Origin: Macrostomum lignano
Taxonomy: Eukaryota
NCBI GenBank assembly: GCA_002269645.1
Contig: NIVC01000064.1
Coordinates: 558,001-622,000 of the forward strand
Direction: 5' to 3'
Length of the DNA stretch: 64,000 bases
Below are positions 1-43,589 of the stretch, one piece after another; position 1 is the first letter of the stretch, and each line of letters starts with the position of its first letter. The position numbers and the translations under genes were made by a program. A model generated the notes under the pieces. That model saw nothing but the letters and a program-made list of their open reading frames with translations. It was not told the DNA's origin and searched no databases.

Positions 1-1690
1 GGTGAGGCTGGGCCGCATGACTCAGCCGCTGCAGCTCATGCTGTCGCTTCGTCTCGGCCACCGTCGACCAAGTGCTGCTGCCAGTGGACCCGGATGTCCG
101 TCTGAGCTGACCGCGGAGCTGCAGGGTGAGCGATTGAGCCACAGGTGTCGACTGTTGACAGCTGCGGCTGTTTAACATGACTGACGCGCAAGCTCTGCAT
201 TGACGCCCTCTGCTTCCCTCATTCAGGATCCGCATTCGTCAGAAAGTGTGTACGCGACCTCGCTGCCAGAAGCGCCTCTGATTGTACCTGTCATGAGAAG
301 GTTAGTGGCGATTGTGTCCAATGATCTCGTTTACTATATATCAAATACTGAGTACAATTCACCCGAATCGCTTGAGCAGCTCGCAGCTGCTGACGGTCCG
401 GTTCTCGACGGGCGACTCCGAGCCGAGCGCGAGCTGCGGTCGCATCGAGCTGACTATCGCGGTGGCCAAGAAGGGCTTCTGCAGCAGGCACATGCTGCTG
501 CATCGGGGCCGCTGCCTCTTCATCTCCGACTCGGAGCTGCGGCTGTCGGATCTGAGCTGGACTGGAGTTGAGCTGGCTGCGATCTCCGGGAAGGAGCAGC
601 TGGATGAGCTAATGAGGGACAGTGAGTGCTGAGCTGAATGAGCTCACTGAGGGACAGTGAGTGAGCTGCTCATGCTGGTCATTGCTCATGGGTACAGTGC
701 TGAGCTGCTGCTCATGCTGGTCATTGCTCATGGGTACAGTGCTGAGCTGCTGCTCATGCTGATCATTGCTCATGGGTACTCAGTGCTGAGCTGCTGATCA
801 TGCTGGTCATTGCTCATGGGTACTCAGTGCTGAGCTGCTGATCATGCTGGTCGTTGCATGTCAGAGCTGAGCTGTTTTATACTTCTGTCATTACTATTAA
901 AAGTTCACAGCATTGTATCCTTGGACGCATATTTCAGATAAACAGAGACAGCATCGCTACCCATTCCTCATGCCTCTGGACCTAAGCCAAGTCCCAGTCA
1001 GAGTCGGACTGTTCTACAATGTATCGTCCAGCACAATGTTTTATCTTGACAATGCCGCTGGCTCGTGCTCAGCTGACCCAATCAGCCCCAGAGATGCCCA
1101 AGAACTTTTTCTTCTGGTTAGGTAAGTGACAACATTGGAAAAGTGCTGCAGTGTGATCGAATCAATGCCGTTGAACTTCGCAGAATCATCATATCAGCCC
1201 CTTCTGAACCTGCAGGGAGCCAAGACTTTGGGATTCTGGTCAATCAGTGGGGTGCGCATCGCTGATGGTTACTGGATTCTCGACTGCTCAGCTCAGCTTC
1301 TCGAGCTGCAGCTCCTCAGCCAGGTCTCTGCTGAGCTTTCCCGAGAGCCCCTTGAATGAATCTCTTGCTGCAGGTGCGAAGAACTGTACAAGTTTCCTGG
1401 ATGAAACTTTTAGTGAGCAGTTGCAGGTAAAACAGTTTATAAATGGCTCTATTGCCCTAGTCGTAGTTATGATCATTGTGTGTTTAGTTGGATTGCTCAC
1501 GGCGATAATATTTGGATATCGTCGGCGAGCTAAATCTATTGCGGAAGGACTCGAACAGCAAAATAGAAGGATGAGCACTGGAGAGGTTCCTGCTGCGCTC
1601 TGCGTGATGAAGAGTGAATGCCTTGTATCGCCAAACACGAATTTGACGACTTCGGAGTTGAAGCAGCGAAAGTCTAATTCAAAGCAGTAA
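1..1690 (+). CDS. Receptor copy 1: CUB-like + C-type-lectin-like + TM protein (5' end outside window)
   Basis: Manually spliced exons <1-125, 243-300 (or ancestral acceptor 227 with 2-nt deficit), 380-621, 938-1121, 1216-1690. GT-AG borders with matching phases 1/2/1/2. CUB-like motifs CSWEV..P.VV.V.N.LLTVRFST; CTLD-like motifs GRCLFIS..LAAISGKEQLDEL..VRVGL..CASL..C; TM IALVVVMIIVCLVGLLTAIIFGY followed by RRR; AATAAA at 1712. Confidence 0.75.
633..862 (+). repeat. 42-bp intronic VNTR after exon B (copy 1, ~4.5 units)
   Basis: Unit GCTGAGCTGCTGCTCATGCTGGTCATTGCTCATGGGTACAGT; the same VNTR follows exon B in all six copies. Confidence 0.9.
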
Positions 1691-2079
1691 AACAAAGTTA
1701 TTAGCAGGAGCAATAAACTGAACGCTAGGCAAGCCACACAGTAAATACTTTAACCGGTGGGACAGTGTCACATATAAATTGGTACAAACATCAATCAGTG
1801 ATAGATTGGTACCATATTGGAGTTTACCTAATCTGTGCTAAATATAGCGCTTGCTTTCAGCATGCTTTTCATGACGTCTGTTTAACTGCCTCTATCACTG
1901 AAAACGCAAATACAACTTTTACGAGCTAATTTCGTAGCTTGTAATTCACACATTTTCTGATCGCTTTTGTTGTTAAAATATGTTTTTCGTTTCTTTTGTC
2001 TGTGCCTCAATTAGCTCTCAACTTGTGGGCGCTGCACATTTAAAACTACCATTTTTGCTAAACAATGCTGATTCAGACA

Positions 2080-2782
2080 CGTCAAGAGATGTCAAGATCA
2101 CGGGGAATTGCTGAGATGTCAAGACTCACGGGGGAATTGCTGAGATGTCAAGACTCACGGAGGAATTGCTGAGATGTCATGACTCACGGGGGAATTGCTG
2201 AGATGACAATGATCACGGGGAATTGCTAAGATGTCATGACTCACGGGGGAATTGCTGAGATGTCAAGACTCACGGGGGAATTGCTGAGATGTCAAGACTC
2301 ACGGGGGAATTGCTGAGATGTCAAGACTCATGGGGAATTGCTGAGATGTCAAGACTCACGGGGAATTGCTAAGATGTCAAGACTCACGGGGGAATTGCTG
2401 AGATGTCAAGACTCACGGGGGAATTGCTGAGATGTCAAGACTCACGGGGGAATTGCTGAGATGTCAAGACTCACGGGGAATTGCTGAGATGTCAAGACTC
2501 ACGGGGGAGTTGCTGAGATGTCAAGACTCACGGGGGAATTGCTAAGATGTCAAGACTCACGGGGAATTGCTGAGATGTCAAGACTCACGGGGAATTGCTG
2601 AGATGTCAAGACTCACGGGGAATTGCTGAGATGTCAAGACTCACGGGGAATTGCTGAGATGTCATGACTCAGGGGAATGTCTTCTATGACGCCTGACAGA
2701 GGCATCCTGTCAGACATAAAAGAAGCATAACTGATTTGCTTGGACAACTGTTTGGGACCCGCGAAGCGGGTTAACCTGCTAG
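2080..2782 (+). mobile_element. Non-autonomous Helitron-like element carrying ~20 x 28-29-bp minisatellite
   Basis: Tandem GAGATGTCAAGACTCACGGGG(G)AATTGCT at ~2085-2675. 3' hairpin ACCCGC-GAA-GCGGGT (2757-2771) followed by CTAG|T (2779-2783), the classic Helitron 3' end. 5' end uncertain. Confidence 0.6.
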
Positions 2783-2789
2783 TAATGTA

Positions 2790-3108
2790 TGCACTAAAGG
2801 GGGCGCCAAAATTATATTCACCAAGGGTGCCATACTGAGCAAAATGAAGGCGGTGAGGACCTTTTTATGACGACCTGATCGAGCTTATAGTATTGAGTTA
2901 GTCGGGAAATTTCTACGCTTATGTTTTCTGGCACTCCAGTGTCTTTTTCCTGTTTTGGATTCAATCACTCCGTTTGTTCAAATTACGCTCGTATTATAGC
3001 TGTGAATATTGATAATTTTTGGGAATGCCAGTCCAAAGAAAAATGGTGCCAACATTGCCAGCCACTAAAATGGGGCCGGCCGCCCCCCTCCCCTTAAATC
3101 CGGCCCTG
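2790..3108. mobile_element. Partial hAT-like MITE
   Basis: Ends in CCGGCCCTG with GGGCGCC/GGTGCC subterminal motifs; only one terminus seen. Confidence 0.3.
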
Positions 3109-3589
3109 GCCACGGAGACCGCCCATTCCGCTAGCACCTGGTGACCAAAAACTTTCATGGAAGTAATGTCGCTCAGGAGGGCCCGTTGGTTTCGTCTGCA
3201 GCGAAGTCCTTCTCACCAATATAAGAGCCTCAGTTGCGGTCGTTCAGCTATGGTCCGACTAAATTCCATCGGCCAGCACTTCACGAAACGGCAGTTGCGT
3301 GCCTGAATTTTGCGTACTTCGCGTGCGAGTGTGTTAAAGAATCGTGGAGTTTAAGCTCCAAATTAAGCAAAAATAAATTCTTAACTTTACCATGAACATG
3401 CTTTCATTGCCACGAGCTGTACGTACAATTGTAGTTAATTTGAGACAACCTGCTTGTATGTTTGCCTGTTCTCAAATGACTTATCGAGTTGTTGCATTTT
3501 AATTTTCTATTTCGAATTTGGAATAGAGTGGCGGCAGACTACTCATTAGTAGGAAAGCAAAGCATTGATTGTGGATAAAACTCGGCGGG

Positions 3590-3760
3590 TAAAACTCTGG
3601 TGCTACCCTTAGTGAAGAGCTGTCTACTCCAGACTCACTGCGAAGAATAACGCAAAAAGCAGAAACAATCATAGAGGAAGCGTTGGCCAAAAATTAGAAA
3701 AAGACCGCACGAACTTGCAGTTCTACTTGTACACGGACACGTACTCGTACAGTGCGCACG
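3590..3760 (+). pseudogene. Remnant of a further receptor copy (intron-1 sequence only)
   Basis: Aligns to intron 1 of copy 2 (~9415-9560) and copy 4 (~32400-32540): GGGTAAAACT..TAGTGAAGAGCTGTCTAC..GCGTTGGCCAAAA..GACC; no exon A upstream. Confidence 0.6.
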
Positions 3761-9024: not shown

Positions 9025-11607
9025 GATCGAGGCAGCCCACCACTACTGCATCCAGGACAGCATCAAAGCGTTCTCAATGAACGCCGACTCAGACCAGCCT
9101 GAGACTCTGCTCACCAACCACAGGGAGGTGTACGGACTCGTCTCATCGCAGCGATGCAGCTGGGAGGTGAGGCTGGGCCGCATGACTCAGCCGCTGCAGC
9201 TCGTGCTGTCGCTTCGGCTCGGCCACCGTCAGCCGGGTGCTGCTGCGAGCGGACCCGGATGTCCGTCTGAGCTGACCGCGCTGCTGAAAGGTGAGTTATA
9301 GGGGCTCCGCAGCATTGATGGCAGCGACACGAGTAGCCTTCATACTTTTCCCACTTACCTTTAGCCTTTAACAGGGCACCAGGATAATTCATAAAAATCC
9401 AACTGAGGTTGCCGAGGGTAAAACTGCTGTTCCCCATAGTGAAGAGCTGTCTACCCCAGACTCTCCAAGACGAATAAACACGCATAAGCAGAAACAATGA
9501 AAGAGAAAGCGTTGGCCAAAATTTAGAAAAGACCACACGGACTTGCAATTCTAGCTCGTACTAGTACTCGTACTATGTGCACGTAGAAGCGCAGTTCTGA
9601 GAGTTGGCTAGGATTTGAGGTAGTTAGGTAGTTAGGTAAGAACTTCGGGTCCATTGAGATTTGCCGCAGTTCAATTTGCCCGCGAGAGAGTTGCCCGCCG
9701 AGTTTTTTCCCGCCGAGGTTTGCCCGCAATTCTTTTTCCTGCAGCGCATTTGGCCACCCGGCAGATTTTGTCTGCATTGCCTTCCCAATCCTTAGTACAT
9801 ATAAATCTTTATAAAGAGATTTACACGATCAAAACGTTTTCATCGTAACTTCATATCAAATTCATAACTTTTTTCTTGGGGGGGGGATAATACGAGCGTA
9901 CAGACAAAATCTAGCTGCCAAATGCTCTGCAGGAAAAATGCATTACCGGCAAACCTCAGCGGGCAAATCATCGCGGGAAATTCGCTCACAGGCAAATGCA
10001 CCGCGGGAAAATCTCGGCGGGCAAATCTCGGCGGGAAAATCTCGGCGGGCAAATCTCGGCGGGCAAATCTCCACGGGCAAATCTCGGCGAACGATTCGTC
10101 TGCGGGAACTTCTCGTGCTCCCAAGAACTTCGGTGAGAGTTAGTTACTTTAGTGTAAAGTCTATACTCGTAGCTTCAGAAATAAAATTAAGGTCTGCAAT
10201 GAGGTGCGACTTTTCAGAGCACAAAACGTTTTTGTTAAATACAGAAAGTTCAGTCCCTATTCGCGTAAACCTCGTACAACTTAGACTCCGGGTTCCTCAA
10301 GACCTGGAAGAATGGGACGAATTTGCCGCAAGCTCCATTGGTTGTTTCAGTGATGAACAAGTGAGTTTCGTAGTACTGTACTTGCAGTGTAAGCACTTAA
10401 GCTTACCAACTGTGGGACAGCTGAGCAATGTAATTATTGCCTGTAATGCTTAACAGCTCGCAGCTGCTGACGGTCCGGTTCTCGACGAGCGACGAGCTGA
10501 GCGCGAGCTGCGGTCGCATCGAGCTGACCATCGCGGTGGCCAAGAAGGGCTTCTGCGGCAGGCACATGCTGCTGCATCGGGGCCGCTGCCTCTTCATCTC
10601 CGACTCGGAGCTGCGGCTGTCGGATCTGAGCGGGACTGGAGTTGAGCTGGCTGCGATCTCCGGGACGGAGCAGCTGCATGAGCTGATGAGGGACAGTGAG
10701 TGCTGAGCTGCTACTCATGCTGGTCATTGCTCATGGGTACAGTGCTGAGCTGCTGCTCATGCTGGTCATTTCTCGTGGTACCAGGCCGAGCTGCTTTTAT
10801 GCCTCCGTATCACTAATGTTAAGTTCCCAGCTTTGTATCATTTCATGCATATTTCAGATCAACAGAGACAGTATCGCTACCCATTCCTCATGCCTCTGGA
10901 CCTAAGCCAAGTCCCAGTCAGAGTCGGACTGTTCTACAATGTATCGTCAGGCAGAATGTTTTTTCTGGACAATGCCGCTGGCTCGTGCTCAGTTGCCCTA
11001 ATCAGCCCCAGAGATGCCCAAGAACTTTATCTTCTGGTTAGGTAAGTGACAATATAGGACGACTTCTCGAATCAATACCGTTTAAATTCGCAGAATCATC
11101 AACGACAGTCCCTCCTGAACTGGCAGGGAGCCAGGACTTTGGGATTCTGGCCAATCAGTGCAGTGCGCATCGCTGATGCTTGCCGGATTCTCGACTGATC
11201 AGCTCAACTTCTCGAGCTGCAGGTCCTCAGCCAGGTCTCTGCTGAGCTTTCCCGAGAGCCCCTCAAATGAATCTCTTGCTGCAGGTGCGAACAACTGCCT
11301 GAAGAATTTCCTGGACAGAACTTTTAGTCAGCAGTTGCAGGAGAAACAGTTTAGAAATGGCTCTATTGACCTGTTCGTAGTTATAACCATCGTATGTTTA
11401 GTTGCGATGCTCATGGGGATAATAATTAGATATATTTATTACCGTCGGCGAGGTCAATTTAATGCGGAAGGATTCGAACAGCAAAATAGACGGATGAGCA
11501 CTGGAGAGGTTCCTGCTGCACACTGCGAGATGAAGAGCGAAGGGCACGCGTCTTGTATCGCCAAACACGAATTTGACGATTACCAAGTTGAAACAGCTAA
11601 AGTCTAA
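9025..11607 (+). CDS. Receptor copy 2 (signal-peptide end of exon A missing; otherwise open)
   Basis: Exons ~9029-9290, 10285-10360, 10457-10695, 10858-11041, 11127-11607 splice in frame. TM LFVVITIVCLVAMLMGIIIRYIYY. Homology to copies 3/4 begins abruptly at GAGGCAGCCCAC (~9029). Confidence 0.7.
9647..10122. mobile_element. MULE-type foldback MITE in intron 1 of copy 2
   Basis: Perfect 9-bp TSD AAGAACTTC (9638-9646 and 10123-10131), GGG...CCC termini, inverted GCGGG(C/A)AAAT subrepeats; empty site present in copy 4 (~32639-32650). Confidence 0.85.
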
Positions 11608-11771
11608 TTTTAAGGCAGTAAAACAAAGTTATTAGCACGAGGAATGAACTAAACGCTAGGCAAGCCACCCAGACAGTACTTTAAATAGTGAGAGATTGGG
11701 TCCGTATAAATCGGTGCCAGGATCTATCACAGATGGATAGATTGGCAACATATTGGAGTTTAACCTCCATA

Positions 11772-15979: not shown

Positions 15980-17593
15980 ATGACCTGGAGCTGGCTGCTT
16001 CTCACAGCTCCAGCGTTTGTCAGCCTCTTCATCATCAACTGCGAGGCTGCTCACCACTACTGCATCCAGGACAGCATCAAAGCGTTCTCAATGAACGCTG
16101 ACTCAGACCAGCCTGAGACTCTGCTCACCAACCACAGGGAGGTGAACGGACTCGTCTCATCGCAGCGATGCAGCTGGGAGGTGAGTCTGGGCCGCATGAC
16201 TCAGCCGCTGCAGCTCATGCTGTCGCTTCGTCTCGGCCACCGTCGACCAAGTGCTGCTGCCAGTGGACCCGGATGTCCGTCTGAGCTGACCGCGGAGCTG
16301 AAGGGTGAGTTATAGGGGCTCCGCAGCATTGATGGCAGCGACACGGAAGCAATCAGTATCAAATTAGGAATTAGGAGGCGGGCCTGCGAGAATTGCCACC
16401 TCAACTGAATAGCTTCTGTAGGGTGCCAGCTGCATAGGCACAAGTGAAGAGGCTACGATAGTCAGTGAACCATTCTGACGAACCTTCTTGTTTTTCTTCT
16501 TTGCCGTAGCCGTCATTTCTTCCTTCTTCTTGCCTTGAATACAGATATCTCCCTTCTGCCACGTCTGATGTCAGTAATATTCGAGCTTTGTCTGTTAGAC
16601 GATCTCCTCCACATGTTCTGGTTCCTATCCCTATACCTCCTCCATTTTTCTCGGAAACCAGACATTTGCCTTTTTCTCTTTTCATGAAATCCTTTGCACT
16701 CTTATGTAGCATTTCATTTCAAATGCTTTGAATGTCTCCACACTTCTCTTCCCCAGAGTTCAGCTCTCGCAACCACAGAGCAGTGTTACTCAAATGACCG
16801 CCTTTGTTAAGTTCATCAAGCATATCATTGAGCTGGTTGCGACGCCAATTCGAATTCTGATCGCTTCCTCCGATGTCCCATTCTCCGTGATGATTGATCA
16901 CAAATATTAAGATTTCTTCACGTGTTTTTTGACGACGCTTAGTAGATACTCATTCAGAAAAATTCACGTATCTCCGTAGGAGACAGCTGAGAGCTTCATT
17001 TTGCAGACTCTCGCAGACGAGACGAGGAGTGCAGTGCAATATCGATTGATCGTATATCGATAGTTAGAAAACTTTTCACAGAAGCAATATTTTTGCAAAG
17101 CAAAATCAATGAATTTAAAAGCACGTACTTAAAGAAATTGACTTCATATCGACTATTCACCGCTTAAAGATACGGAGTTCCGCAAGACCTGGAGAAATGG
17201 AATGAATCTTCCAAAGGCTCCATTGATCGTGTCAGTAATGCACAAGTGAGTTCCATAGTATAAACACTTTAAGCCTGTGGCTGATTATAAAATGCACTCT
17301 AGAGCTCGTAATGATGTCTACATGCCCAACTCTTCAACAGCTCGCAGCTGCTGACGGTCCGGTTCTCGACGGGCGACTTCGAGACAAGCGCGAGCTGCGG
17401 TCGCATCGAGCTGACCATCGCGGTGACCAAGAAGGGCTTCTGCGGCAGGCACATGCTGCTGCATCGGGGCCGCTGCCTCTTCATCTCCGACTCGGAGCTG
17501 CGGCTGTCGGATCTGAGCGGAACTGGAGTTGAGCTGGCTGCGATCTCTGGGATGGAGCAGCTGGATGAGCTGATGAGGGACAGTGAGTGCTGA
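15980..17593 (+). CDS. Receptor copy 3: signal peptide + CUB-like + half CTLD; exons C and D deleted (secreted form or pseudogene)
   Basis: ATG 15980 MTWSWLLLTAPAFVSLFIINCEA; exons 15980-16304, 17170-17245, 17341-17582. Read-through gives RDSEC* (stop 17591-17593). At ~17696 the VNTR joins directly to 3'UTR sequence homologous to ~1698 of copy 1, with AATAAA at 17711. Confidence 0.65.
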
Positions 17594-18344
17594 GCTGCTG
17601 CTCATGCTGGTCATTGCTCATGGGTACAGTGCTGAGCTGCTGCTCATGCTGGTCATTGCTCATGGGTAAAGTACTGAGTTGCTGCTCATACTGGTGTTAT
17701 CAGCAGGAGTAATAAACTAAACGCTAGGCAAGCCAAACAGCAAGTACTTTAACCAGTGTGACAGTGGGTCCACATAAGTCGCCAAAAAGAGATCTATCTT
17801 TTTGGATAAATTGGTACCATATTGGAGTTTAAACCTCCACAGCGAAGACCCACAGGGCTGATTTTGACTGCCTAATTGATTAATTTCTGCAATCCCTTGT
17901 GCAAGAACTTTCTATGCAAAATATAGCGCTTGCTTTGAGCATGCTTTGTTGTTTATAGTATATAGCTCGTACTTTTAGTACTTTATATAGTAATTGTCAG
18001 ATACATAATATTGATTAATATTGTTAATGCAAATAGCTGTGCGTATCCCTTTCTAGAAAGTTCAATAAATATCCAATACAGTATCGTACCGATATATCTA
18101 TGGTTGTTAGTTCATATCGCAAATACGCTAATACTTTAAGTGCCCCCCAAACTGCTCAATTTTTCATCTTGTGTATTTTTTTGTTAAAACTGATAAAATA
18201 TACTTAATTATAAGAAGCAAAATTCAACAGGTTATGGGCCCAGCCGAGGCCACTGCGAGTACTTCGATGTACTAGATCATTCTGGTAATCTGGTTCTTCG
18301 TGCCATCTGGAAACTTGATCGCTCGGTCGATCAGTTACGTTGCT

Positions 18345-25896: not shown

Positions 25897-25929
25897 TTGT
25901 TTTTGTTGTTTTTGTTGTTGTTGTTGTTG
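25897..25929. repeat. (TTG)n microsatellite
   Basis: Direct inspection. Confidence 0.9.
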
Positions 25930-27395: not shown

Positions 27396-27397
27396 CT

Positions 27398-28601
27398 TTT
27401 GTTGTTGTTGTTGTTGTTGTTGCTTGCGGAAGGTGGTCTAGGGCTGCCTATGCAGGCAGTCCAAGAACCTAGCCACCAGATCGCCATCGGCCAAGTCCTC
27501 CAGTTGGTGTAGGTCCGTCGCGTGCCGAGCTCCGGCCAGGGCCGGACATTCGAGGAAGTGGTCCTTGTCTTCTAAGAGGTCGCACCGGAGGCATCTGCTA
27601 TCCTCCCTAGTGCCTATTCGGTGCTGATAGTACGCTGTAGAAGGATCGTGACCGGCACGCATTTGAGCTATGGAAACCTGCAGCGCGCGAGGTCGAGCAG
27701 GCATCGAGGGGGTCTTGCTGTAGACCCTCCTCAGCCGGTCATTCAGGAGAGGCTTATAGTTGATGAAACGGCGTATACGGCTTCGGGCTGCCTCGATGTC
27801 GATCCCTAGAAGATCCTGGGGGAGCAGACAGGCGTTCTTTGCCTCGGTGTCGGCTCTCTCGTTACCAGGAGTCCCAGAATGACCTGGGATCCACTGCAGG
27901 ACCACGTCGGCGTGGCTCTCCACCTGCGTCAGCTTGCGCTTGAGCGACTCGAGCAGAGGGTTCAGGGAGTGCTGCCGACCTTTGAGCGCCGCGATGGCCG
28001 ATTGGCTGTCGGTGAGGATCAGGGCCGAGTCCTGCTTAGTCTCAAGGATGTGGTCCAGGGCGAGGTGCAGAGCTGAGAGTTCAGCTTGGAACGAGCTACA
28101 CCAGCGCCCGGTAGCAGCTCCCTCAATCCAAACCACCTGGCCCGTAGTAGGGGCGACTGCCACACAGGCTGCCCCTCCATTCTCCGTTCCTTCGGAAGCA
28201 GATCCGTCAGTGAAATAGTGGATCTTGCGGTCGCCCCATGATTTAATGGTGTCTTCCGTCGCTGACCGCCTGGTCTCTGGCGGATCGCTCCTGGAGATTG
28301 GCTGAGTCAGGTGTTCGCAAAGGGTGACCCGATCCTCGATTCTCGGAAGCCAGGGCTTGTTTCTGATCCAGTTTGATTCCCGGCGTGGGCAATTCAGAAT
28401 CTGCTCGGATTCCAGCTTGGCTGCGCCAAGGGTCGTGGGCTGGCCGCCGGAGGGCCTTCTCGACAGCCAGTAGGGCTCTTCTGTGTCCTTCAACGGAAAT
28501 GGGAACGGTTCCGAGTTCGAGGTAGACGGCCTCCTCCGGAGCGGATTTAGGGAGGCCGGCCACGATTCTGAGCGCTGTCCTTTGAGCTAGATCGCCACCT
28601 G
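27398..28601 (-). mobile_element. 5'-truncated RNase H-containing LINE (I/Ingi-like) with (CAA)n tail
   Basis: ORF 28493-27438: YFTDGS..AELSAL..LTDSQSA..LQWIPGH..GNERAD (non-LTR RNase H), then QMRAGH..C..C..HFLECP (C-terminal CCHC); upstream frameshifted RIVAGLPKSAPEEAV; (CAA)n after the stop. Confidence 0.85.
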
Positions 28602-31909: not shown

Positions 31910-34298
31910 ATGGCCTGGAGCTGGCTGCTTCTCACAGCTACAGCGTTTGTCAGCCTCCTCGTCATCAATTGCGAGGCAGCCCACCACTACTGCATCCAGG
32001 ACAGCATCAAAGCATTCTCAATGAACGCTGACTCAGACCAGCCTGAGACTCTGCTCACCAACCACAGGGAGGTGAACGGACTCGCCTCATCGCAGCGATG
32101 TAGCTGGGAGGTGAGGCTGGGCCGCATGACTCAGCCGCTGCAGCTCGTGCTGTCGCTTCGTCTCGGTCACCGCCGACCGGGTGCTGCTGCCAGCGGACCC
32201 GGATGTCCGTCTGAGCTGACCGCGGCGCTGCAGGGTGAGTTTTCGGGGGCCTGCAGCGCTGACGAACCACGGAGAATTTACGGGGAGAGGTTGCGGTGAA
32301 GTTCGAGTAGCCCTTATCATTTTTCCCATCTACCCTAAAAACTTTTTAAGGGATCAGATATTAATGCTATAAATTTATAAAAATCCAATTTTGGATAAAA
32401 ATCCTAGGGTAAAACTCTGGCGCTCCCCAAGTGAAGAACTGTCTACCCCAGACTCTCTAGGACGAATAATGAAAAAATCAGAAAAAATGAAGGAGAAAGC
32501 GTTAGCCAAAATTTAGAAAAAGACCACAAAAACTTGCAATTTTACTTTTATGGACAACACATACACGTACAATGTGTACCTACAAGCACAGTTCTAATAG
32601 TTGGCTAGGCTTTGAGGTCGGACACAGATGTTAGGTAGGAACTTCGGTGAGAGTTAGTTGCTTTAGTGAAACGCCTAAAATGCTCGTAGCTTCAGAAATA
32701 TAATTAAGGCGCCACTTTTCGGAGCACAATGTATTTTGTTAAATTTATTTAATTTTATTCTCTACAACTTAGACTCAGGGTTCCGCAAGACCTGGAAGAA
32801 TGGAACGAATCTGCCAAAAACTCCATTGGTCGTTTCAGTGATGAACCAGTGAGTTCCGTAGCATCGTACATGCAGTTTAAACACCTGGGCTTAGCAACTG
32901 TGGGATAGCTGAGCGATGTAATCATTGCCTTTAATATTTAATAGCTCGCAGCTGCTGACGGTCCGGTTCTCGACGGGCGACTCCGAGCCGAGCGCGAGCT
33001 GCGGTCGCATCGAGCTGACCATCGCGGTGGCCAAGAAGGGCTTCTGCGGCAGGCACATGCTGCTGCATCGGGGCCGCTGCCTCTTCATCTCCGACTCGGA
33101 GCTGCGGCTGTCGGATCTGAGCGGGACTGGAGTTGAGCTGGCTGCGATCTCCGGGAAGGAGCAGCTGGATAAGCTTTTGAGGGACAGTGAGTGCTGAGCT
33201 GCTGCTCATGCTGGTCATTGCTCATGGGTACAGTGCTGAGCTGAGCTGCTCATACTGGTCATTGCTCATGGGTACAGTGCTGAGCTGAGCTGCTCATACT
33301 GGTCATTGCTCATGGGTACAGTGCTGAGCTGAGCTGCTCATACTGGTCATTGCTCATGGGTACAGTGCTGAGCTGCTGCTATTCTCAATTTCAGACGAAC
33401 GCAGGGCCAAACAATACCCATTTCTCAAGCCGCTGAACTTGAGCAAACAAGCAAGAGTGGGAGTTGTTCGCTGTTCCGCCTCAAAGACTTTTTCTGTCCA
33501 TTTCAACTCCACCAGCGGCGTGTGCTCACGGGAACGTTTCAACTCAACTGCCGTTTCAGATCTGGCAGTTAAAGGGTGAGCAGTTTTTTTATCTATTTAT
33601 TGATATAACAGTAAATAATTAACCTAGTCATAGGTTGAACACTCGCTCACTGACTAGAAAAGATCAAGCAGAATGATAAATGATTACATGTACATCCCTG
33701 CTTTTCACTGCCTGTAGAAATCTCACTGCCGACACTCAGTGCACAGCCTTGCAAGCTGATCCTGAAGGCAGAGCCGGGCTGCACAGCTGCTCATGCAGAG
33801 TGAAGATGCTTTCACTGCTCAGCTTCAGCGAGACTCCATCATTCGGCTCAGAGTCGGGCAAAGTGAGAACAGGAAACTGTTGGCTACATCACTTATGTGG
33901 GAAAAACTCAAGCCACAGAACTCCAGCGAATTCTAGGACAACTGGAAAATTTGGAGATAATTTTGTCGCTTTCTTCATTGCGCTGTACATAATTTCTGCC
34001 ATCACTTTGGCATTCATGTGCCACTACTCAAGATTTCTCAAGGTTGGTTGACAGTAGTTGTGTTATGTCCATAACTATGTGTTTATTTATATTCTTCGAA
34101 CTCAGCTTGCTATGACATATATTGACAAGGTTTTATATGAATGTTCCGTTTCAGATGTTCCGGTCTGGACCGATAATGGTGCAGAGAGCGGGTCAAGACT
34201 CTGACTTCGCTGCTGCTGCTGCTGCTAAAAGAAAGCATGTGTTGCATATTTTTATAGAACGGCAGTTCACTCCGTACAGCCCTCTTTCTGAGGTGTAA
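31910..34298 (+). CDS. Receptor copy 4, apparently intact: SP + CUB-like + CTLD-like + TM + tail ending YSPLSEV*
   Basis: Exons 31910-32234, 32773-32848, 32945-33186, 33395-33575, 33718-34042, 34155-34298, all phase-compatible; TM FVAFFIALYIISAITLAFM; last exon runs into unit 1 of the 77-bp array. Confidence 0.75.
33192..33375 (+). repeat. Exon-B VNTR (copy 4; 42/44-bp variant, ~4 units)
   Basis: GCTGAGCTGAGCTGCTCATACTGGTCATTGCTCATGGGTACAGT. Confidence 0.9.
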
Positions 34299-35722
34299 CT
34301 TTTGTACGCTTTGTATCTTTTCATATTTTTATAGAAAGGCTGTTTACTCCGCACAGCCCTCCTTCTGAGGTGTAACTTGAGTACGCTTCGTATCTTTTCA
34401 TATTTTTATAGAAAGGCTGTTTACTCCGTACAGCCCTCTTTCTGAGGTGTAACTTGAGTACGCTTCGTATCTTTTCATATTTTTATAGAAAGGCTGTTTA
34501 CTCCGTACAGCCCTCTTTCTGAGGTGTAACTTGAGTACGCTTCGTATCTTTTCATATTTTTATAGAAAGGCTGTTTACTCCGCACAGCCCTCTTTCTGAG
34601 GTGTAACTTGAGTACGCTTCGTATCTTTTCATATTTTTATAGAAAGGCTGTTTACTCCGTACAGCCCTCTTTCTGAGGTGTAACTTGAGTACGCTTCGTA
34701 TCTTTTCATATTTTTATAGAAAGGCTGTTTACTCCGTACAGCCCTCTTTCTGAGGTGTAACTTGAGTACGCTTCGTATCTTTTCATATTTTTATAGAAAG
34801 GCTGTTTACTCCGTACAGCCCTCTTTCTGAGGTGTAACTTTTGTACGCTTCGTATCTTTTCATATTTTTATAGAAAGGCTGTTTACTCCGTACAGCCCTC
34901 TTTCTGAGGTGTAACTTGTGTACGCTTCGTATCTTTTCATATTTTTATAGAAAGGCTGTTTGCACTGCACAGCCCTCTTTCTGAGGTGTAACTTGAGTAC
35001 GCTTCGTATCTTTTCATATTTTTATAGAAAGGCTGTTTGCACTGCACAGCCCTCTTTCTGAGGTGTAACTTTTGTACCCCTTGTATTTTTGCCTATGTTT
35101 TACAGAACGCTGTTTACTCCGTACAGCCCTCTTTCTGAGGTGTAACTTTTGTACCCCTTGTATTTTTGCCTATGTTTTACAGAACGCTGTTTACTCCGTA
35201 CAGCCCTCTTTCTGAGGTGTAACTTTTGTACCCCTTGTATTTTTGCCTATGTTTTACAGAACGCTGTTTACTCCGTACAGCCCTCTTTCTGAGGTGTAAC
35301 TTTTGTACCCCTTGTATTTTTGCCTATGTTTTACAGAACGCTGTTTACTCCGTACAGCCCTCTTTCTGAGGTGTAACTTTTGTACCCCTTGTATTTTTGC
35401 CTATGTTTTACAGAACGCTGTTTACTCCGTACAGCCCTCTTTCTGAGGTGTAACTTTTGTACCCCTTGTATTTTTGCCTATGTTTTACAGAACGCTGTTT
35501 ACTCCGTACAGCCCTCTTTCTGAGGTGTAACTTTTGTACCCCTTGTATTTTTGCCTATGTTTTACAGAACGCTGTTTACTCCGTACAGCCCTCTTTCTGA
35601 GGTGTAACTTTTGTACCCCTTGTATTTTTGCCTATGTTTTACAGAACGCTGTTTACTCCTTACAGCCCTCTTTCTGAGGTGTAACTTGTGTACGCTTTGT
35701 ATGTTTTGCGTATTTTTTACAG
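34243..35722 (+). repeat. 77-bp tandem array, 19 units, each containing a splice acceptor + mini terminal exon
   Basis: Period 77 bp; two sub-blocks (~10 + ~9 units); each unit has a pyrimidine tract + AG, then ..TTTACTCCGTACAGCCCTCTTTCTGAGGTGTAA. Confidence 0.95.
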
Positions 35723-36226
35723 AATTTACTTTATAACCAAGGATAGGATTTTCGCACTTTGGACAAACTACTGATATCATTGCTAGTTGAGTTCTTGTGC
35801 TAAGTTGTGACGTTGACAGTTCCTTTGTCTCCCCAGTTCTTCAGCTGGTATTCGCTGGGAATATTTAATGTGTATTTTGGTTTGTTCAATGGGTTGTACT
35901 TTTATGTTTGCTGAAGGTGGTTGGCAATACTTTATTTAACTTTTTAAATTTTGTGGCTTGGGAGGTGATGTCTCTTGGGAGCTCGGCTGTTGTAGTCTTG
36001 CAGAATGGAATCTGTGTTACAGCGGAAGACGCTATGAGAAACTTGTCCTGCATTTGAAATTCGAATTGATATCGTTGAATTTTCATGCTGTCTGAATCGG
36101 TAAATGTGACGATAGAAGGCTGGACCGGCCCTGGTACTCAAGGAGATTTTGTCGACAATATTACTCGTGTAATTAAGTAGTTACCGGTGGACGTATAGAG
36201 AAAGCGTTCAATAATTTTAGCTTAAA

Positions 36227-36790
36227 CTAGCAATTCGCCCTCCCGTTGGGGGCCAACAAAAAGAAGAATAAATATTTTTGAATAAAATGCATGTCGCTTC
36301 TGAACTGTCAGTCTTAACATCTCAGCAATTCCACTGTAAGTCTTGACATCGCAGTGATTCCCCCCTAAGCCTTGACATCTCATCAATTCCCCCCTAAGCC
36401 TTGACATCTCAGCAATTCCCCCCTAAGCCTTGACATCTCAGCAATTCCCCCTAAGCCTTGACATCGCATCAATTCCCCCTAAGCCTTGACATCTCATCAA
36501 TTCCCCCCTAAGCCTTGACATCGCATCAATTCCCCCCTAAGCCTTGACATCTTATCAATTCCCCCTAAGCCTTGACATCTCATCAATTCCCCCTAAGCCT
36601 TGACATCGCATCAATTCCCCCCCCTAAGCCTTGACATCTCATCAATTCCCCATAAGCCTTGACATCTCATCAATTCCCCATAAGCCTTGACATCGCAGCA
36701 ATTCCCCCTAAGCCTTGACATCTCAGCAATTCCCCCTAAGCTCTGACATCGCAGCAATTCCCAAATTAATCGTTTATGTTCGACATAATG
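36227..36790 (-). mobile_element. Helitron-like element carrying ~15 x 29-bp minisatellite
   Basis: A|CTAG at 36226-36230 followed by GC hairpin GCCCTCCCGTTGGGGGC; units CCCCCTAAGCCTTGACATCTCA(T/G)CAATT (36340-36760), related to the 2.1-kb repeat in reverse. Confidence 0.6.
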
Positions 36791-38486
36791 TTTCTTTTAT
36801 TTTTGAAATTATGCTTCTTTCATGTTGTCATCTTTTGATAATTGTACCGCTAAATTAAACTGCACTTATGGATGAATTTCATGTAAATATTTTATAGTAC
36901 AGTGAGAGTCATCTGCTACGAAAAGTTGTGCCACATTTTTTTCACGTTTCACGCTGTGTAAGTCAGTGATTCAACCCAGCATCAGTAGCTGATTGAAAGC
37001 GGAAGTGCACCATAGAGGGCTGCGCTAATGACTCACTTGTACTCACATGGAATAGTGACTCCAAATACGTAGAACAGGGAGCTGGTCTGTGCAATCAGCG
37101 CGATGTTGATTTTTACCTGTCTTAAGGCCGTCCCCTGTCCCCCTCTCCTTAGGCTCAACCGAAGGTATCTTTTCTCACCACTTTTATCGCTCAGGCAGTG
37201 AAAACGCTGAGCACTTTGTCTGCCACTACCGGGTGGTCTTCACCAGGCCAGACTCACTCAAGTCTGGCCAAACCCGGTTCTCTCCGATGTTCGCAGGCCC
37301 AAGAAAATACCGCTGCTCACCCGGTACCTCTAGGATGCAATGACCCCCCCCCTGAGCGACATCACTTCGATGGTAGCTATCTGTCGTCAGGGGCTCGCGA
37401 AACGGGTGTTCTAGATTATTCTGCAGCTGGTGCCCCCTACAGCTAAGACAAGCCAAGCCAAGTCCACCTGTCTACAAATCCCCACACATGACCAACTCTG
37501 TGCAGTGCATGCAGTGTACGACATAGCCTACGACACTGTCAAGTGCATTCGTTTGTTTGTAGAAAGACGGTTTTTGGTACTGTCATAGGCTACACTCTCC
37601 TGAAAGCACTACTCAGAAAATTTACACTGTACACTGTAGCTAGCAATGGACTGACTAAAGATGGAAACAATAACGTGCTCTGCTAGCAGGCATTACAGCG
37701 CCCGCGCAAAACAGTTGATTGTCTCTCTGCCAGACACCTCCGACAGAAGACGGAAAGGCAGCGCAGTGGGCATTATCTGAAAAGTGCGCGCATCAGGTAG
37801 GGATTCAGAGCTGTATGTATCGCATTTCTTGGAATATTTCAGCCGACATCAGATTGGTGTTTGAATTCTGAGGGTGTAATTTTCTATCGGCACTGGCCAA
37901 AACCCTGCGGAATTCAAATTAGCACAAGTCTTTAGAGTCTCAGATTTTGTTGTTATAATACACATTTGATTGCTTTTTAACTTTTAAAAATAGCTTTATA
38001 GTTGTCAACTGTCATTTTAATTAGTCTGCAAATATACGAGCTATAGCATTAGCTGATTAGTTGATTAGGTAATTAGTTAATTAGTTTTGCAATTTTTCAG
38101 TCGCATTTTATTAAAATCTGCTTCAGATGTGCAGCAAACAGCTGCTTGCATTTCTCCTGCTCATCGCGGTATCTCAGACTCCAATTCGAGGGTAAGTAAG
38201 CTAAGCACTTGGCTCTCAATGTAATGTGAGCAATACGACCAGTGAGGATTGCATTATTATGGTGTGGGATTGGCAAAAATTGCTTTGGAAATGGGGAGGC
38301 ACTTGTATCGAACTGCTAGCGTTATTTTTCTAATGTATAAAGTATGATGTAAAAAAAATAAAAGAAAAGAAGGCCTTCATAGCTAATGGAATTTGAAGTT
38401 TGTTCTTTTTTAATTATTAACACTGGCTTCCTTGACAGCCAACCAGATTTGCTGCTTAGATCTGATCCATAAAGAACGTGCCATAC

Positions 38487-40399
38487 ATGTTATCCGCCTT
38501 CATGCTTGCGCACCAACTGTTCCCCATGCAGGACACTCGCTGAGCGGCACCAGTGCCACAGCTCAGGACACCTGCTGCAACTGAGGGACGGTGAGACGGA
38601 AACCCTGGACACACGCAACAGGGACCAGAGCGAGCTGACTGCATCGCAGACCTGCCTATGGGAAGTGAAACCGCCGGCCAACCTGATCGAGCCGGGCAAT
38701 TTCATCTTGAAAATCGCTCGGAAAAGAGGCGGGTCTGAGGCGGCGATGCCCGATGGCAATCCACCGAGCTGCGATTGGAGCCTCACGGTGGAACTGACAG
38801 GCAAGTTAGATTCAAGATCATGGCGGAGGTCAAAAGTGAGTATTATGAGTAATTAACAGCTCAGTTATGGATTGCACTTTGCAGGATCCAGCTTCAGCAA
38901 GGCGTGGCACAACCGGGACCTGCCGCCGAAGGCACCCCTGGTAGTCCCTGTGACCAACAGGTATGATTCTGATTTTGCATTTAAAAGCAGCTGGTGGCTT
39001 TTTGACTAGTTTATGCAACATTGCGCTGACAGTGTTGGTCCGATGTGTTTCTGTCCTGCAGCTCGCAGCTGCTGACGGTCCGGTTCTCGACGGGCGACTT
39101 CGAGCTGAGCGCGAGCTGCGGTCGCATCGAGCTGACCATCGCGGTGGCCAAGAAGGGCTTCTGCGGCAGGCACATGCTGCTGCATCGGGGCCGCTGCCTC
39201 TTCATCTCCGACTTGGAGCTGCGGCTGTCGGATCTGAGCGGAACTGGAGTTGAGCTGGCTGCGATCTCCGGGACGGAGCAGCTGCATGAGCTGATGAGGG
39301 ACAGTGAGTGCTGAGCTGCTGCTCATGCTGGTCATTGCTCATGGGTACAGTGCTGAGCTGCTGCTTATGCTGGTATTGCTCAAGTGTACAGTTTATAACC
39401 GCCGTTATTTCAGATGATGACAGAACAAACGCGCACCCATTCATCAGACCCTTAAACCTGACCAGACCTGTGAGAGTGGCGGTGTTTCGTTGCAACAAAA
39501 TCATTCAATGGACGCAGGTTGCACAGACAGTGAGCTCCAGTTTGTGCGTGATCAGGAATTTCAGCACGACTGGGGCTGCTCAGGAGTCCTTTACTCAACG
39601 GTTCGTTGCTTTTCGTTCCATAGACGTACAGGGCTATGATTTTAAGTTCACGCTAAAGACTGTATCTTGAGTCCTTGGCTACCTGAGCAATTCCCATTGA
39701 GTCCTTGATTACCTGAGCGATTCCCATTGAGTCCTTGGCTACCTGAGCGATTCCCATTGAGTCCTTGGCTACCTGAGCGATTCCCATTGAGTCCTTGGCT
39801 ACCTGAGCGATTCCCATTGAGTCCTTGGCTACCTGAGCGATTCCCATTGAGTCCTTGGCTACCTGAGCGATTCCCATTGAGTCCTTGGCTACCTGAGTGA
39901 TTCCTTGGCTGTTCTTGGCAGTCCTTGGCTGTTTAAGAAAATGTAAACACCATATTACCTAATTAATCATTCCAGGAACCAGTCCATCTCATCACAGGTA
40001 GACTGCGCATCAATCAGTGCTGAACCTGACGATTCGGAGAAACTAAAATTGTCATTCATTGACTGCGACCAGCCGCAGCATCTGTTGCTGAGCTTCCTAA
40101 TTGAGCCAATTAATCAAGATTTGCAACACAACTCCAACTGCTTGGAATCCACAATAACCAGCTGTAAAGATTTGAGCATGCATGTGATTTTTAAAGAATC
40201 AACTGATAAAGAAACGGACAGTTCAGATAAAACTGATCTGATAGCTTTATTTGTGTCTGTGACAGTCTCATTGCTAGTGTCGGCCGTGATTCTGGTAGTT
40301 GCTGTTAAATTTTTTATTTTAAAGCGACAAGGACGTCGTCGCAGATCTAGAAGGTCCAAACCCTTTGATTCATTGTCTGGAATCCCTTTAAGATCTTAG
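38487..40399 (+). CDS. Receptor copy 5, divergent; 1-nt frameshift near the start; GC-AG first intron
   Basis: Exon A ~38487-38800 (ETLDTRN..CLWEV..CDWSLTVELTG) with donor AG|GCAAGT; exons 38885-38960, 39062-39303, 39414-39600, 39976-40399; TM LIALFVSVTVSLLVSAVILVVAVKFFIL; possible extra tail exons to 40622. Confidence 0.65.
39665..39930. repeat. 30-bp minisatellite (~8 units) in intron of copy 5
   Basis: GAGTCCTTGGCTACCTGAGCGATTCCCATT; resembles the Helitron-borne 29-bp unit. Confidence 0.9.
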
Positions 40400-41391
40400 T
40401 TGTTGATTTTAAATCACACTATGTTTGTTCTGGAAAGAGACGATCGGTGCCATATGAAAAAGTATGGTGAGTACCTGACTTACCTGAGTTACCTGACTGC
40501 TAAAACTGACGTCATCACAATTTATTTGTGATGACGTCAGTTGTGATGACGTCATACAATTTTGTTTTGCGTATTTTTTTAGAACGGCTGTTCACTCCGT
40601 CAGCCCTTTGTCTGAAGTGTAACTTTTGTACGCTTTGTGTTTTTTGCGTGCTAACAAGTCATTGCTACAAGCATTATTAATGAACGCTACCCGCCAGATC
40701 TAGAACTGCGCCCAACCTAAGTACCGTGTTTTCCCACAAGATCATAACCTCCGAAACCACCCCAACCTGATTCGATTGTTTGTCTGCTATCAGTTTTATG
40801 TGATTATTATACTACTAACATCCATGTTTGAGAGAAAATACAAATAATTGAATAATCGGCCAGTTCGTCATCGATCACAATCAAGCTTCTACGGGTTCGT
40901 CACTAATTTGCGTACATGTAGCAGCCCGTTAGCACGCGAACTCAATTACGTCAGATCAAATATTCGTCACAAAGTGGAATGTGTGTTACAGCAGAAGACG
41001 CTACGGAGGTGCACCCTTGGTAGTCCCTGTGACCAACAGGTATTATTCTGATTTTGCATTTAAAAGCAGCTGGTGGCCTCTTGACTAGTTTATGTAACAT
41101 TGCCTGACTGACTGTGTTGGTCCGATGTGTTTCTGTCCTGCAGCTCGCAGCTGCTGACGGTCCGGTTCTCGACGGGCGACTTCGAGCCGAGCGCGAGCTG
41201 CGGTCGCATCGAGCTGACCATCGCGGTGGCCAAGAAGGGCTTCTGCGGCAGATACATGCTGCTGCATCGGGGCCGCTGCCTCTTCATCTCCGACTCGGAG
41301 CTGCGGCTGTCGGATCTGAGCGGGACTGGAGTTGAGCTGGCTGCGATCTCCGGGACGGAGCAGCTGGATGAGCTGATGAGGGACAGTGAGT

Positions 41392-41685
41392 GCTGAGCTG
41401 CTGTTCATGCTGGTCATTGCTCATGGGTACAGTGCTGAGCTGCTGATCATGCTGGTCATTGCTCATGGGTACAGTGCTGAGCTGCTGCTCATGCTGGTCA
41501 TTGCTCATGGGTACAGTGCTGAGCTGCTGCTCATGCTGGTCATTGCTCATGAGTACAGTGCTGAGCTGTTGCTCATGCTGGTCATTGCTCATGGGTACAG
41601 TGCTGAGCTGCTGTTCAAGCTGGTCATTGCTCATGGGTACAGTGCTGAGCTGCTGCTCATGCTGGTCATTGCTCATGGGTACAGT
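41392..41685 (+). repeat. Exon-B VNTR (copy 6), 7 x 42 bp
   Basis: Direct count. Confidence 0.95.
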
Positions 41686-41762
41686 GCTGAAAAAATATGT
41701 AACAGAGAGAGTGAGTAAAAACACAAATCGCAAAGCACACGGTAACCCAAAAGTTCTCATGC

Positions 41763-41914
41763 TGTTTTGTGCTCATACAGATATTTTGTGCTCATACTGA
41801 TGTTTTGTGCTCATACTGATGTTTTGTGCTCATACTGATGTTTTGTGCTCATACTGATGTTTTGTGCTCATACTGATGTTTTGTGCTCATACTGATGTTT
41901 TGTGTTCATACTGA
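41763..41914 (+). repeat. 8 x 19-bp repeat abutting the exon C acceptor
   Basis: TGTTTTGTGCTCATACTGA. Confidence 0.9.
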
Positions 41915-43589
41915 CGCATTGCAGATGCGCTTGAAGATGCGATGCCACTGGATTCGAGCAGATGCCTGAGATTCGGAGTTTTTCGCTGCTCTGATTCGGT
42001 TCAGCCTTATGTTTGGGACTCAAACTGCGAACGAATTTCTGCAGCGCAGTTAAATTTACGATTTGAAAACCCGAGTCAGGAATCCAGGTAAGGCTCGGAA
42101 ATCTCGAGGTTACATTTACACACGATAAATTTACGTGTATGCCTTCGACAGTATACTGCTTTCATCTATGTTGCCAATTTGCTCAACCTTCAGATCTGAG
42201 CCGTCAAGCGTCCAGTGCGGCTCTCTGAAGATTGGTAGCAGCAAAACCCTGGAGCTCGCGTTTTCGGATTGTAGCACCCCTATGAGATCCCTGCTGAGCT
42301 TTGCCAACCCGGCACCTGTCAGTATGGGCTCAAAGGAATTGAACCAGTGCATTTTAACATTGACCAAGTTCTGCCGAAATGCATCAACAATAAGTGCTTC
42401 AAATTCTAAAGAGTCAGCCAGCAACAGTCTTCTTTTTGAAGTACCCATGTCGATAATTACAATTCTGATTATTTTGTCATTCTTTTTTGTTGTATTTTGT
42501 ACTCGTCGGAGGCGTTTAACTCGGAGCCAATTCAACAATATTTTAAATTACGTTTGGTGCGGAAGATGCAGACAGTTGAATCCACGCGCATCTATTAATT
42601 CCGTCGCTGCCATATTTGACAGGAGCAGGCGGAAGTGAAAGCAATTTCTTAATCTGTTTTGTTTACTATCAATAATATTTATCATTTCTTTTTAGTTTCA
42701 TCCTGTCTGGCCTAAAATCGCTTACCTAAATACTTAAAAAACGGCTAAGCGTTCCAGTCATTTGCCATATATTTTATTTATTCCGCGCGCCGGTTTCTGT
42801 ATTAGTTTTAGTGTTTAGTTTAGTTCTGTATTTTCCAATGCCGCCCAATTCTGTCCTGTCACTCCACAGTCACCGAGTGGCCTCTATTATTTTATTATCA
42901 TTATTATTTTTTACAAGGGTTGTTCGGGCAAACAGAGAGTAGTCAAGCTTATGTTTTGGGTACCAATATGAAGCCTCAGGGCATGCAGTTGCATTCTAGG
43001 TTGCGTCAGGTTTTTGATAAATTTTGCTAGAATATTTCTATTGTGTCTCTTTCTTCTTCTCATTCGGTAAAATACTTTTACTTATTTTTTTGCAGTAAGG
43101 TTTTAATAAGTCGAAACTTTATTAGAGAGAATCTGTTAAAATTTATCACGGAGAGCTCTATAAAAGTTCCAGATGTACTTAAACAAAAATGATGATTATT
43201 ATTATTAAAATATCAAAACAGAGATTTATTCAGTACCGGGCCTCCAATAGAAAATCGCCCAGACTCCATCATCTCGAGGCTATAGTCGCGGACCCAGTTT
43301 ACAGTGAGGCTAAAATGAATGGCGAAAACACTAAGCTTGTAGTTTTGAACTAGAATTTATGAGAACACTGGTGACAAAGAGCTGAAGATATCTGCAAAGT
43401 TGGTCATTTTTACCACAGCTTCAAATGGTGCTACTCAGCCATACCTGTCTCAGTTTAAATTAGCAAACCATAAACTGGGCTGCAAAACAATGAGGACTGT
43501 GAGACCAAAGATTCCTTACGAGAACAGGACCGTGCCCAAAGTGCCATGTGATGGTAGAAAATGAGGTTTAATTATTGAATATTATTATT

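Follow-up and report, generated by a model that had tools for sequence, protein, structure and literature searches.

A tandem family of CUB-like/C-type-lectin-like membrane protein genes in Macrostomum lignano with one homogenized exon and long-diverged lectin-like halves

A stretch of 64,000 nucleotides from the flatworm Macrostomum lignano (assembly GCA_002269645.1, contig NIVC01000064.1, positions 558,001 to 622,000 of the forward strand), here called the window, carries at its positions 1-42638 six tandem units on the + strand, c1 to c6, that all belong to one gene family. Self-BLAST similarity among the six units is far above chance (E down to 0), and each of them contains a shared block of ~330 bp (coordinates of all features are given in Table 1). 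Forward-frame reading and the splice-site contexts revealed the exon order A, A2, B, C, D with intron phases 1, 2, 1, 2. A first-pass annotation, made from the letters alone, had described the same layout and phases, and the gene models with their canonical splice sites bear it out. Exon A2 has 76 nt, exon B 242 nt and exon C 163 to 187 nt; exon A encodes the signal peptide and the start of domain 1, and exon D the stalk, the transmembrane helix and the tail. All introns are of the GT-AG type save one in c5, a GC-AG intron that two homeologous units share, and c5 bears an additional signal-peptide exon, S. The motifs previously read as equivalents of the WIGL motif of C-type-lectin-like domains (CTLDs) are there verbatim: VRVGL (c1/c2), ARVGV (c4), VRVAV (c5) and LRFGV (c6).

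Closer inspection of the units revealed that only c4 and c5 are complete in the window. The open reading frame (ORF) of c4 is unbroken over five exons joined by GT-AG introns throughout, and c5 is likewise intact. Unit c1, which is cut by the start of the window, is probably a complete gene; read from position 227, its exon A2 has 74 nt and breaks the frame, and an alternative acceptor at 243 keeps the frame, as in model P0007. The other three units are defective. The homology of c2 begins abruptly at 9028, and its exon A lacks a signal peptide, with a stop codon where c1-type copies encode one. Unit c3 has no exons C and D; its exon B is followed by a minisatellite, a remnant resembling the 3' untranslated regions (UTRs) of c1 (1697-1826) and c2 (11628-11769), and then a copia element. 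Unit c6 lacks exon A, its homology to c5 beginning at 41011. The earlier count of six full-layout receptor copies is therefore right in "six units of one gene family" and over-counts in "six receptors."

The annotation of the M. lignano genome is based on RNA-seq (StringTie/TACO assembly, cuts at trans-splicing and poly(A) sites, and TransDecoder ORFs; PMC5730564). One NCBI model, P0005 (BOX15_Mlig033614g1), lies on a contig that is 100% identical to window positions 566-21607 and matches c2 exons B (from MLLHRGRC), C and D exactly; the B-C and C-D junctions of c2 are therefore supported by transcripts. A second NCBI model, P0003, corresponds to exons A2-B-C-D of u3, the c5 orthologue at a homeologous locus (L001, on NIVC01000065.1), and has the same A2-B, B-C and C-D junctions. 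Hence, RNA-seq-derived models from both this locus and its homeologue support the predicted splicing. Neither c4 nor c5 turned up as an NCBI gene record, the UniProt models retrieved over c4- and c5-type exons (P0001 and P0002) fuse neighboring units into chimeras, and c2 alone was called as a gene in a 21-kb stretch (L002) with c1 to c3; the intact units c4 and c5 are not evidently caught as clean gene models. The gene names Mlig033614, Mlig005992 and Mlig017487 had no mention in the literature and supplements searched. Papers on M. lignano "C-type lectins" were set aside as a source on the family; they deal with adhesive proteins and with a gene unrelated to it.

Is the cluster mostly a decaying remnant without current receptor function? 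Three of the six units are truncated or have no signal peptide, the cluster is filled with repeats, the copia element included, and c6 evolves neutrally with respect to its homeologue u4 (nonsynonymous divergence, dN, about equal to synonymous divergence, dS; 0.017/0.019). Against this, the ORFs of c4 and c5 are complete, the homeologues u1 and u3 are intact as well, family members are found in the RNA-seq-based annotation, and dN/dS between window and L001 is 0.2 to 0.55 over most exons. We consider a mere remnant quite improbable. Since the intact units of the two loci have these dN/dS values in exons A, A2 and D, they are constrained genes.

A search with the spliced c4 protein yielded matches from M. 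lignano only. HMMER with a family profile (A5) against 1.84 billion representatives retrieved 19 proteins, of which every named one is from M. lignano; the sole other match of this whole-library search was one short Logan-assembly protein, species not named. The relatives had E-values of 1e-7 to 1e-18 and share an architecture of signal peptide, "HYC ... CxW" all-beta domain, lectin-like part, stalk and transmembrane helix, the consensus of the lectin-like part being "GxC-x-RDML-x-F-x-G-x-CY...LAsF...RPLxL...VRLGxF...C...FxDC...LISFPE." The automatic UniProt names of some members (FHA, PAZ, ZP, PilZ and others) are erratic and look unreliable. Judged by these searches, the family is restricted to Macrostomum, flatworm-specific and an orphan to Pfam.

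Neither Pfam with all six spliced models nor a sequence search of the PDB with spliced c4 alone matched anything. With a 23-sequence family profile (A8), the PDB search yielded 36 matches, and 36/36 are CTLDs, the best being DC-SIGNR (E=2.4e-4); CD69, BDCA-2, type II antifreeze protein, NKG2A and NKR-P1 are among them, aligned at the start of the domain (carbohydrate-recognition domain, CRD). In hhalign, the C-terminal half of the family scored 21.8 against a 6-sequence CTLD profile, compared to 9.8±1.7 for shuffles, 0/100 of which reached that score. Furthermore, AlphaFold2 with the A8 alignment modeled the ectodomain of P0022, a full-length, transcript-based M. lignano paralogue, with a predicted local distance difference test score (pLDDT) of 81.7 (~90 in the CTLD part) and a predicted TM-score (pTM) of 0.84. 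The 50 best rows listed by Foldseek against the PDB for this model are all CTLDs (target TM-score 0.5-0.68, probability 1.0), including mincle, Reg3-alpha, DCIR, CD69, LOX-1, langerin and CLEC9A. P0003, which is of the type found in the window, aligns to every secondary-structure element of the CTLD (order beta0-beta1-alpha1-alpha2-beta2...beta5). Exon B encodes the scaffold half of this domain (beta0-beta1-alpha1-alpha2) together with the last two strands of the preceding domain; the WIGL-like strand and the long-loop region come from exon C, and beta3 to beta5, ahead of the stalk, from exon D. The family has the C0-C0' hairpin pair and the cysteines C2 and C3 (QC...DC), their pairing being deduced from the alignment, and the beta4 region reads (L/V)xFx(D/S/N)C.

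The first-pass annotation had proposed a CUB domain upstream of the CTLD. CUB domains are ten-stranded beta-sandwiches of ~110 residues in which cysteines are conserved. In the AlphaFold2 model of P0022, the N-terminal domain is all-beta, with ~10 strands in ~140 residues, and its first cysteine pair (HYC...CxW) is conserved in the family, the second being variable. Consistent with a CUB-like nature, the N-terminal half scored 23.7 (P=0.002) in hhalign against a profile of four sequences, each confirmed as CUB by Pfam, over 30 columns around C-x-W; 100 column shuffles gave 9.1±1.9, and 0/100 reached 23.7. The cross-controls (N-terminal half against CTLD, C-terminal half against CUB) were not significant. 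Eight members with the N-terminal domain carry the automatic UniProt name "CUB domain-containing," which lends weak support only, and no CUB protein was among the 36 PDB matches of the A8 profile. A CUB-like N-terminal domain is likely but not proven, with moderate support. The predicted layout is that of a type I membrane protein, as had been proposed: a signal peptide, two extracellular domains, a stalk, one transmembrane helix and a short tail of 7-66 residues, in which no signaling motif was seen by eye.

The six units are far from uniformly similar. Exon B and the adjoining 42-bp minisatellite are 95-99% identical across all units; among ten copies of exon B (six from the window and four from L001), pairs differ at 5-12 of 242 nt, and dS between all units is 0.016-0.077 with dN≈dS. 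Low dS with dN≈dS does not arise from purifying selection but is what homogenization yields. The homogenized tract begins at most 3 nt from the exon-B acceptor and passes the donor into the 42/44-bp minisatellite, which each unit carries at 2-7 copies. The intron preceding exon B shows no conservation, and identity is 93-100% over the first 84 nt directly 3' of the exon, within the minisatellite. The GC content at third codon positions (GC3) reaches 0.86-0.90 in exon B, against 0.66-0.77 in exon A and 0.42-0.59 in exons C and D, a pattern characteristic of GC-biased gene conversion. At sites 39 and 181 of exon B, all four gametes occur among the ten copies, and hence, sequence has been exchanged between the copies. 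Exon A is partly homogenized among c1 to c4. In sum, these data indicate that exon-limited gene conversion keeps exon B near-identical in otherwise ancient paralogues.

Exon B is also open in a second sense frame and in antisense in every unit, giving recurring Ala/Arg/Gln-rich ORFs of 90-120 aa. Could its nucleotides be conserved by selection for a second, overlapping role, be it as an antisense ORF, as an RNA structure or as a splicing element? Apart from these frames, the start of the conserved block at most 3 nt from the acceptor would fit. Open alternative frames are to be expected at a GC3 of ~0.9, though; the antisense "proteins" are of low complexity (Ala/Gln/Arg), the conservation extends into an intronic minisatellite of variable copy number, and the four-gamete pattern speaks for exchange between copies. 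Judged from the ORF list and these comparisons, this explanation is extremely unlikely, and the simplest view of the extra ORFs is that they follow from a GC3 close to 0.9. A transposon fragment was rejected as the origin of the exon-B repeat, which always lies between in-phase exons of the family and is absent elsewhere in the window. The minisatellite unit starts inside the exon-B splice donor. By eye, its strings GAGCTGAGCTG and GCTGG resemble immunoglobulin switch-region and chi-like cores, which may be coincidence.

Exons C and D present the reverse picture. As had been noted, they are barely alignable between c1/2, c4, c5 and c6, with 22-36% protein identity, and their dS between types is >1.5 or incalculable; the exon A of c5 is equally distant from the c1-c4 type. 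Because synonymous sites are saturated and the flanking introns cannot be aligned, this divergence is old, not fast. The idea that the lectin halves are unusually variable did not hold: they have diverged like old paralogues, and the anomaly is the homogenized exon B. The per-exon dN/dS comparison that had been suggested gave a single hint in the other direction, a dN/dS of ~1.3-1.4 for exon C in c1-c2 and in c4-u1, the two pairs that are closest. This bears on the explanation that the units are relatively recent duplicates whose exons C and D were driven apart by diversifying selection of an immune or self/non-self type, with exon B as a constrained scaffold. It would also be in line with the fact that the part encoded by C and D is the usual ligand face of CTLDs, and with copy content that varies between the homeologous loci. 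However, the values above 1 stem from a handful of substitutions, and c5-u3 gives 0.59. Moreover, the saturation in C and D speaks for old divergence, dN≈dS at very low dS in exon B is unlike purifying selection on a scaffold, the intronic minisatellite is conserved along with the exon, and a GC3 of 0.9 fits biased conversion. Recent diversification is therefore unlikely, and ancient paralogues with a converted exon B remain our preferred explanation.

The homeologous locus L001 is collinear with window positions 12.4-49.8 kb (92-98% identity), down to a PH-domain gene. Its first unit, u1, joins c3-type exons A, A2 and B, via the minisatellite, to c4-type exons C and D, which makes one intact gene. 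The next unit, u2, consists of a second c5-type S/A/A2/B set and of exons C and D of a type that the window does not have. Thereafter come the orthologues of c5 (u3) and c6 (u4). Every breakpoint of the differences in unit structure between window and L001 lies at exon B or at the minisatellite. Birth-and-death evolution, which the first-pass annotation had put forward, is supported by the truncated units and by this differing unit content, with unequal crossing-over at a fixed joint.

It is imaginable that some of the units, especially c6, serve as alternative 3' cassettes for the 5' exons of the unit upstream. At a distance of only 0.7 kb downstream of c5, c6 retains an in-frame series of exons B, C and D whose splice sites are intact; the c6 homeologue has an in-frame 12-nt deletion instead of a frameshift; and the NCBI coding sequence of P0003 nominally starts in u2 and goes on in u3. 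The A2 exons of u2 and u3 are 100% identical, though, which makes the placement of P0003 ambiguous, and we rejected this span as cross-unit splicing; no cross-unit junction was observed, and the near-equality of dN and dS between c6 and u4 gives no sign of constraint. There is little likelihood that the cluster is such a cassette gene.

Our preferred reading, which we consider probable, is that of a tandem family of type I CUB-like/CTLD proteins, old paralogues with an exon B homogenized by conversion and with modules re-paired at one joint, that act as recognition receptors. Ongoing GC-biased gene conversion or unequal crossing-over would keep exon B and the minisatellite alike, and the joint between the two would be the site at which N-terminal and C/D modules are re-paired, duplicated or lost. 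Such re-pairing may yield intact genes (c4, c5 and probably c1) as well as wrecks (c2, c3 and c6). From the sequence, we infer that the products function as cell-surface recognition or adhesion receptors, in which a constant scaffold would be combined with a differing CTLD half, the one that usually makes the ligand contacts.

Several points weigh against this reading. No single member matched Pfam PF00431 (CUB) or Lectin_C, even at E<=1-10, and a CUB fold is not among the 50 Foldseek rows listed for P0022, the domain not having been searched alone. Only 1/5 of the P0022 models had a pLDDT of >80, and an AlphaFold2 model of P0003 with an 11-row alignment reached a pLDDT of 47 and was discarded. 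The modeled structure is that of a distant paralogue, P0022 being ~19-28% identical to the window-type rows in A8, and therefore, the CTLD fold reaches the window genes only via homology. Within the CTLD, C1 and C4 of the canonical disulfide (alpha1 to beta5) are absent in all members, and inspection of the alignment shows that the EPN/QPD motif of the long loop and the WND motif of beta4 are missing. Because of these missing motifs the domain is lectin-like rather than a lectin, and Ca2+-dependent sugar binding by the family is probably not to be expected. Finally, the assembly is PacBio-based and highly redundant, so that apparent rearrangements could stem from mis-joins at exon B or the minisatellite; it has been described as highly duplicated (PMC5730564). 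Nevertheless, the CTLD fold that had been predicted is borne out by the A8 search of the PDB and by the structure of P0022, and for the CUB domain, the score above all 100 shuffles, the all-beta model and the automatic names stand against the missing Pfam and Foldseek matches.

One of the closest parallels is found in the receptors of the vertebrate natural killer (NK) gene complex (Ly49/KLR, CD69, LOX-1/DECTIN-1), whose CTLDs are split over three exons and which evolve by duplication, loss and gene conversion (PMC3322459 and general knowledge). The three-exon split is shared by the flatworm family, as are a CTLD without Ca2+/sugar motif and single-pass membrane receptors in tandem clusters of one family; vertebrate NK-type receptors (CD69, LOX-1, CLEC9A, NKG2D) are among its best structural matches. 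In contrast, the NK-complex receptors are of type II, with the N terminus inside the cell, have no CUB-like domain, keep the C1-C4 disulfide and are detected by Pfam, whereas the flatworm proteins, with their signal peptide and C-terminal transmembrane helix, are of type I, probably have a CUB-like domain, lack the C1-C4 disulfide and escape Pfam. There is no orthology at the sequence level, and the NK-complex-like arrangement arose independently in the flatworm.

Nematode CLEC proteins likewise combine C-type-lectin-like and CUB domains; they are lineage-specific, often in tandem and discussed as recognition molecules. They resemble the present family as an invertebrate lineage-specific expansion and, probably, in the two domain types, but they are mostly secreted, without a transmembrane helix, and their domains are caught by standard profiles, unlike those of the Pfam-invisible flatworm family with its transmembrane helix. 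No homology to them was detected in the whole-library HMMER search, and we know of no description of exon-restricted homogenization among them. In clustered protocadherins, KIR, MHC and CEACAM, conversion homogenizes one part of the gene with a rise in GC3 and leaves the specificity part diverged. The region-restricted conversion proposed here would be analogous, although those proteins are unrelated and the tract here is a single 242-bp exon that spans a domain boundary and is coupled to a minisatellite. Attractin, layilin and CD93-type proteins likewise have type I topology and carry a CTLD outside the cell, attractin having a CUB domain in addition, but they are conserved, single-copy, large multidomain proteins, whereas the flatworm proteins are small, two-domain, multi-copy and genus-restricted.

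Table 1. Features of the window and of the extra homeologous unit (window positions unless L001 is given)
Feature	Position	Strand	Details
c1	1-1690	+	A 2-125 (partial, cut by window start), A2 227-300 or 243-300, B 380-621, C 938-1121, D 1216-1690 including stop
c2	9029-11607	+	A 9029-9290, A2 10285-10360, B 10457-10695 (3-nt deletion), C 10858-11041, D 11127-11607
c3	15980-17839	+	truncated; A 15980-16304, A2 17170-17245, B 17341-17582, minisatellite 17586-17695, remnant 17696-17839
c4	31910-34051	+	A 31910-32234, A2 32773-32848, B 32945-33186, C 33395-33575, D 33718-34051; 385 aa
c5	38127-40399	+	S 38127-38191, A 38532-38800 (GC donor), A2 38885-38960, B 39062-39303, C 39414-39600, D 39976-40399; 420 aa
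c6	41011-42638	+	5'-truncated; A2 stub 41011-41039, B 41144-41385, C 41925-42087, D 42152-42638
Shared ~330 bp block	371-761, 10454-10795, 17332-17693, 32943-33378, 39058-39392, 41140-41652	+	self-BLAST
Minisatellite after c1 exon B	665-857	+	~42-44 bp, 4.5 copies; related stretch 598-663 overlaps splice donor
Minisatellite after c2 exon B	10699-10795	+	2.3 copies
Minisatellite after c3 exon B	17586-17695	+	2.6 copies
Minisatellite after c4 exon B	33190-33375	+	4.3 copies, 44-bp variant; L001 junction maps here
Minisatellite after c5 exon B	39307-39392	+	2.1 copies
Minisatellite after c6 exon B	41389-41690	+	7.2 copies
Second-frame/antisense exon-B ORFs	200-571 (+), 10434-10727, 17318-17614, 32931-33218, 39006-39335, 41085-41417 (-)		ORF list
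Extra unit u2	L001 9147-11520		c5-type 5' exons and own C/D (...SPVRVGVFLCAGSKQ... / ...MLAFFDCNSPMKSLLSF... and transmembrane helix)
Copia-type long terminal repeat retrotransposon	18418-23734	+	gag, zinc knuckle, RVT_2; split into several ORFs; directly downstream of c3
351-aa ORF	27438-28493	-	RNase_H and RVT_3 domains
Satellites in and between units	2086-2678, 36313-36762, 34245-35717, 39667-39904, 41763-41914
PH-domain gene	44970-47930	-	coding ~70 bp tandem repeat 46505-47494, peptide ...PTPYPITHLIHAQL...
Purine-rich tandem arrays	48058-48501, 49220-51100		Ser/Pro/Leu-rich on - strand
Crypton-like tyrosine-recombinase ORF	60712-61944	+	DUF3504, Phage_integrase, QRICH1 domains
Tc1/mariner-type transposase remnants	62314-63302	+	HTH_32, DDE_3

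The remainder of the window is rich in repeats and mobile elements. The copia element contains an internal inverted duplication (20058-20434 against 21783-21407, 98.9% identity), and the 351-aa ORF probably represents the 3' part of pol from a non-LTR retrotransposon. The satellites include a 29-bp array of 20 copies with an inverted copy 34 kb away, a 77-bp array of 19 copies downstream of c4, a 30-bp array of 8 copies inside the C-D intron of c5 and a 19-bp array of 8 copies inside the B-C intron of c6. The PH-domain gene flanks the cluster in L001 as well (22526-25494). Window positions 44000-52000 have a strong positive GC skew (0.25-0.39), coinciding with purine-rich, coding-like tandem arrays.

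A more far-reaching possibility, which we consider improbable, is a polymorphic locus that serves allorecognition, the recognition of mates or gametes, or that of microbes, with the joint of exon B and minisatellite as a dedicated recombination module. If so, a constant CUB/scaffold module would be repeatedly re-paired with a library of diverged CTLD cassettes, receptor repertoires would differ between individuals or even between homeologous chromosomes, and re-pairing could also act at the RNA level via cross-unit splicing.

In sum, the old, exon-B-converted paralogues described here add a flatworm-specific, Pfam-invisible member to the C-type-lectin-like receptors, and their recovery shows that profile building and structure prediction can find such orphans. 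The cluster is a clean, small case of exon-limited concerted evolution in which the minisatellite starts at the splice donor, and its module re-pairing is visible between homeologous loci of a recent polyploid. Research on immunity, symbiosis or reproduction in M. lignano gains a set of candidate receptors at the cell surface.

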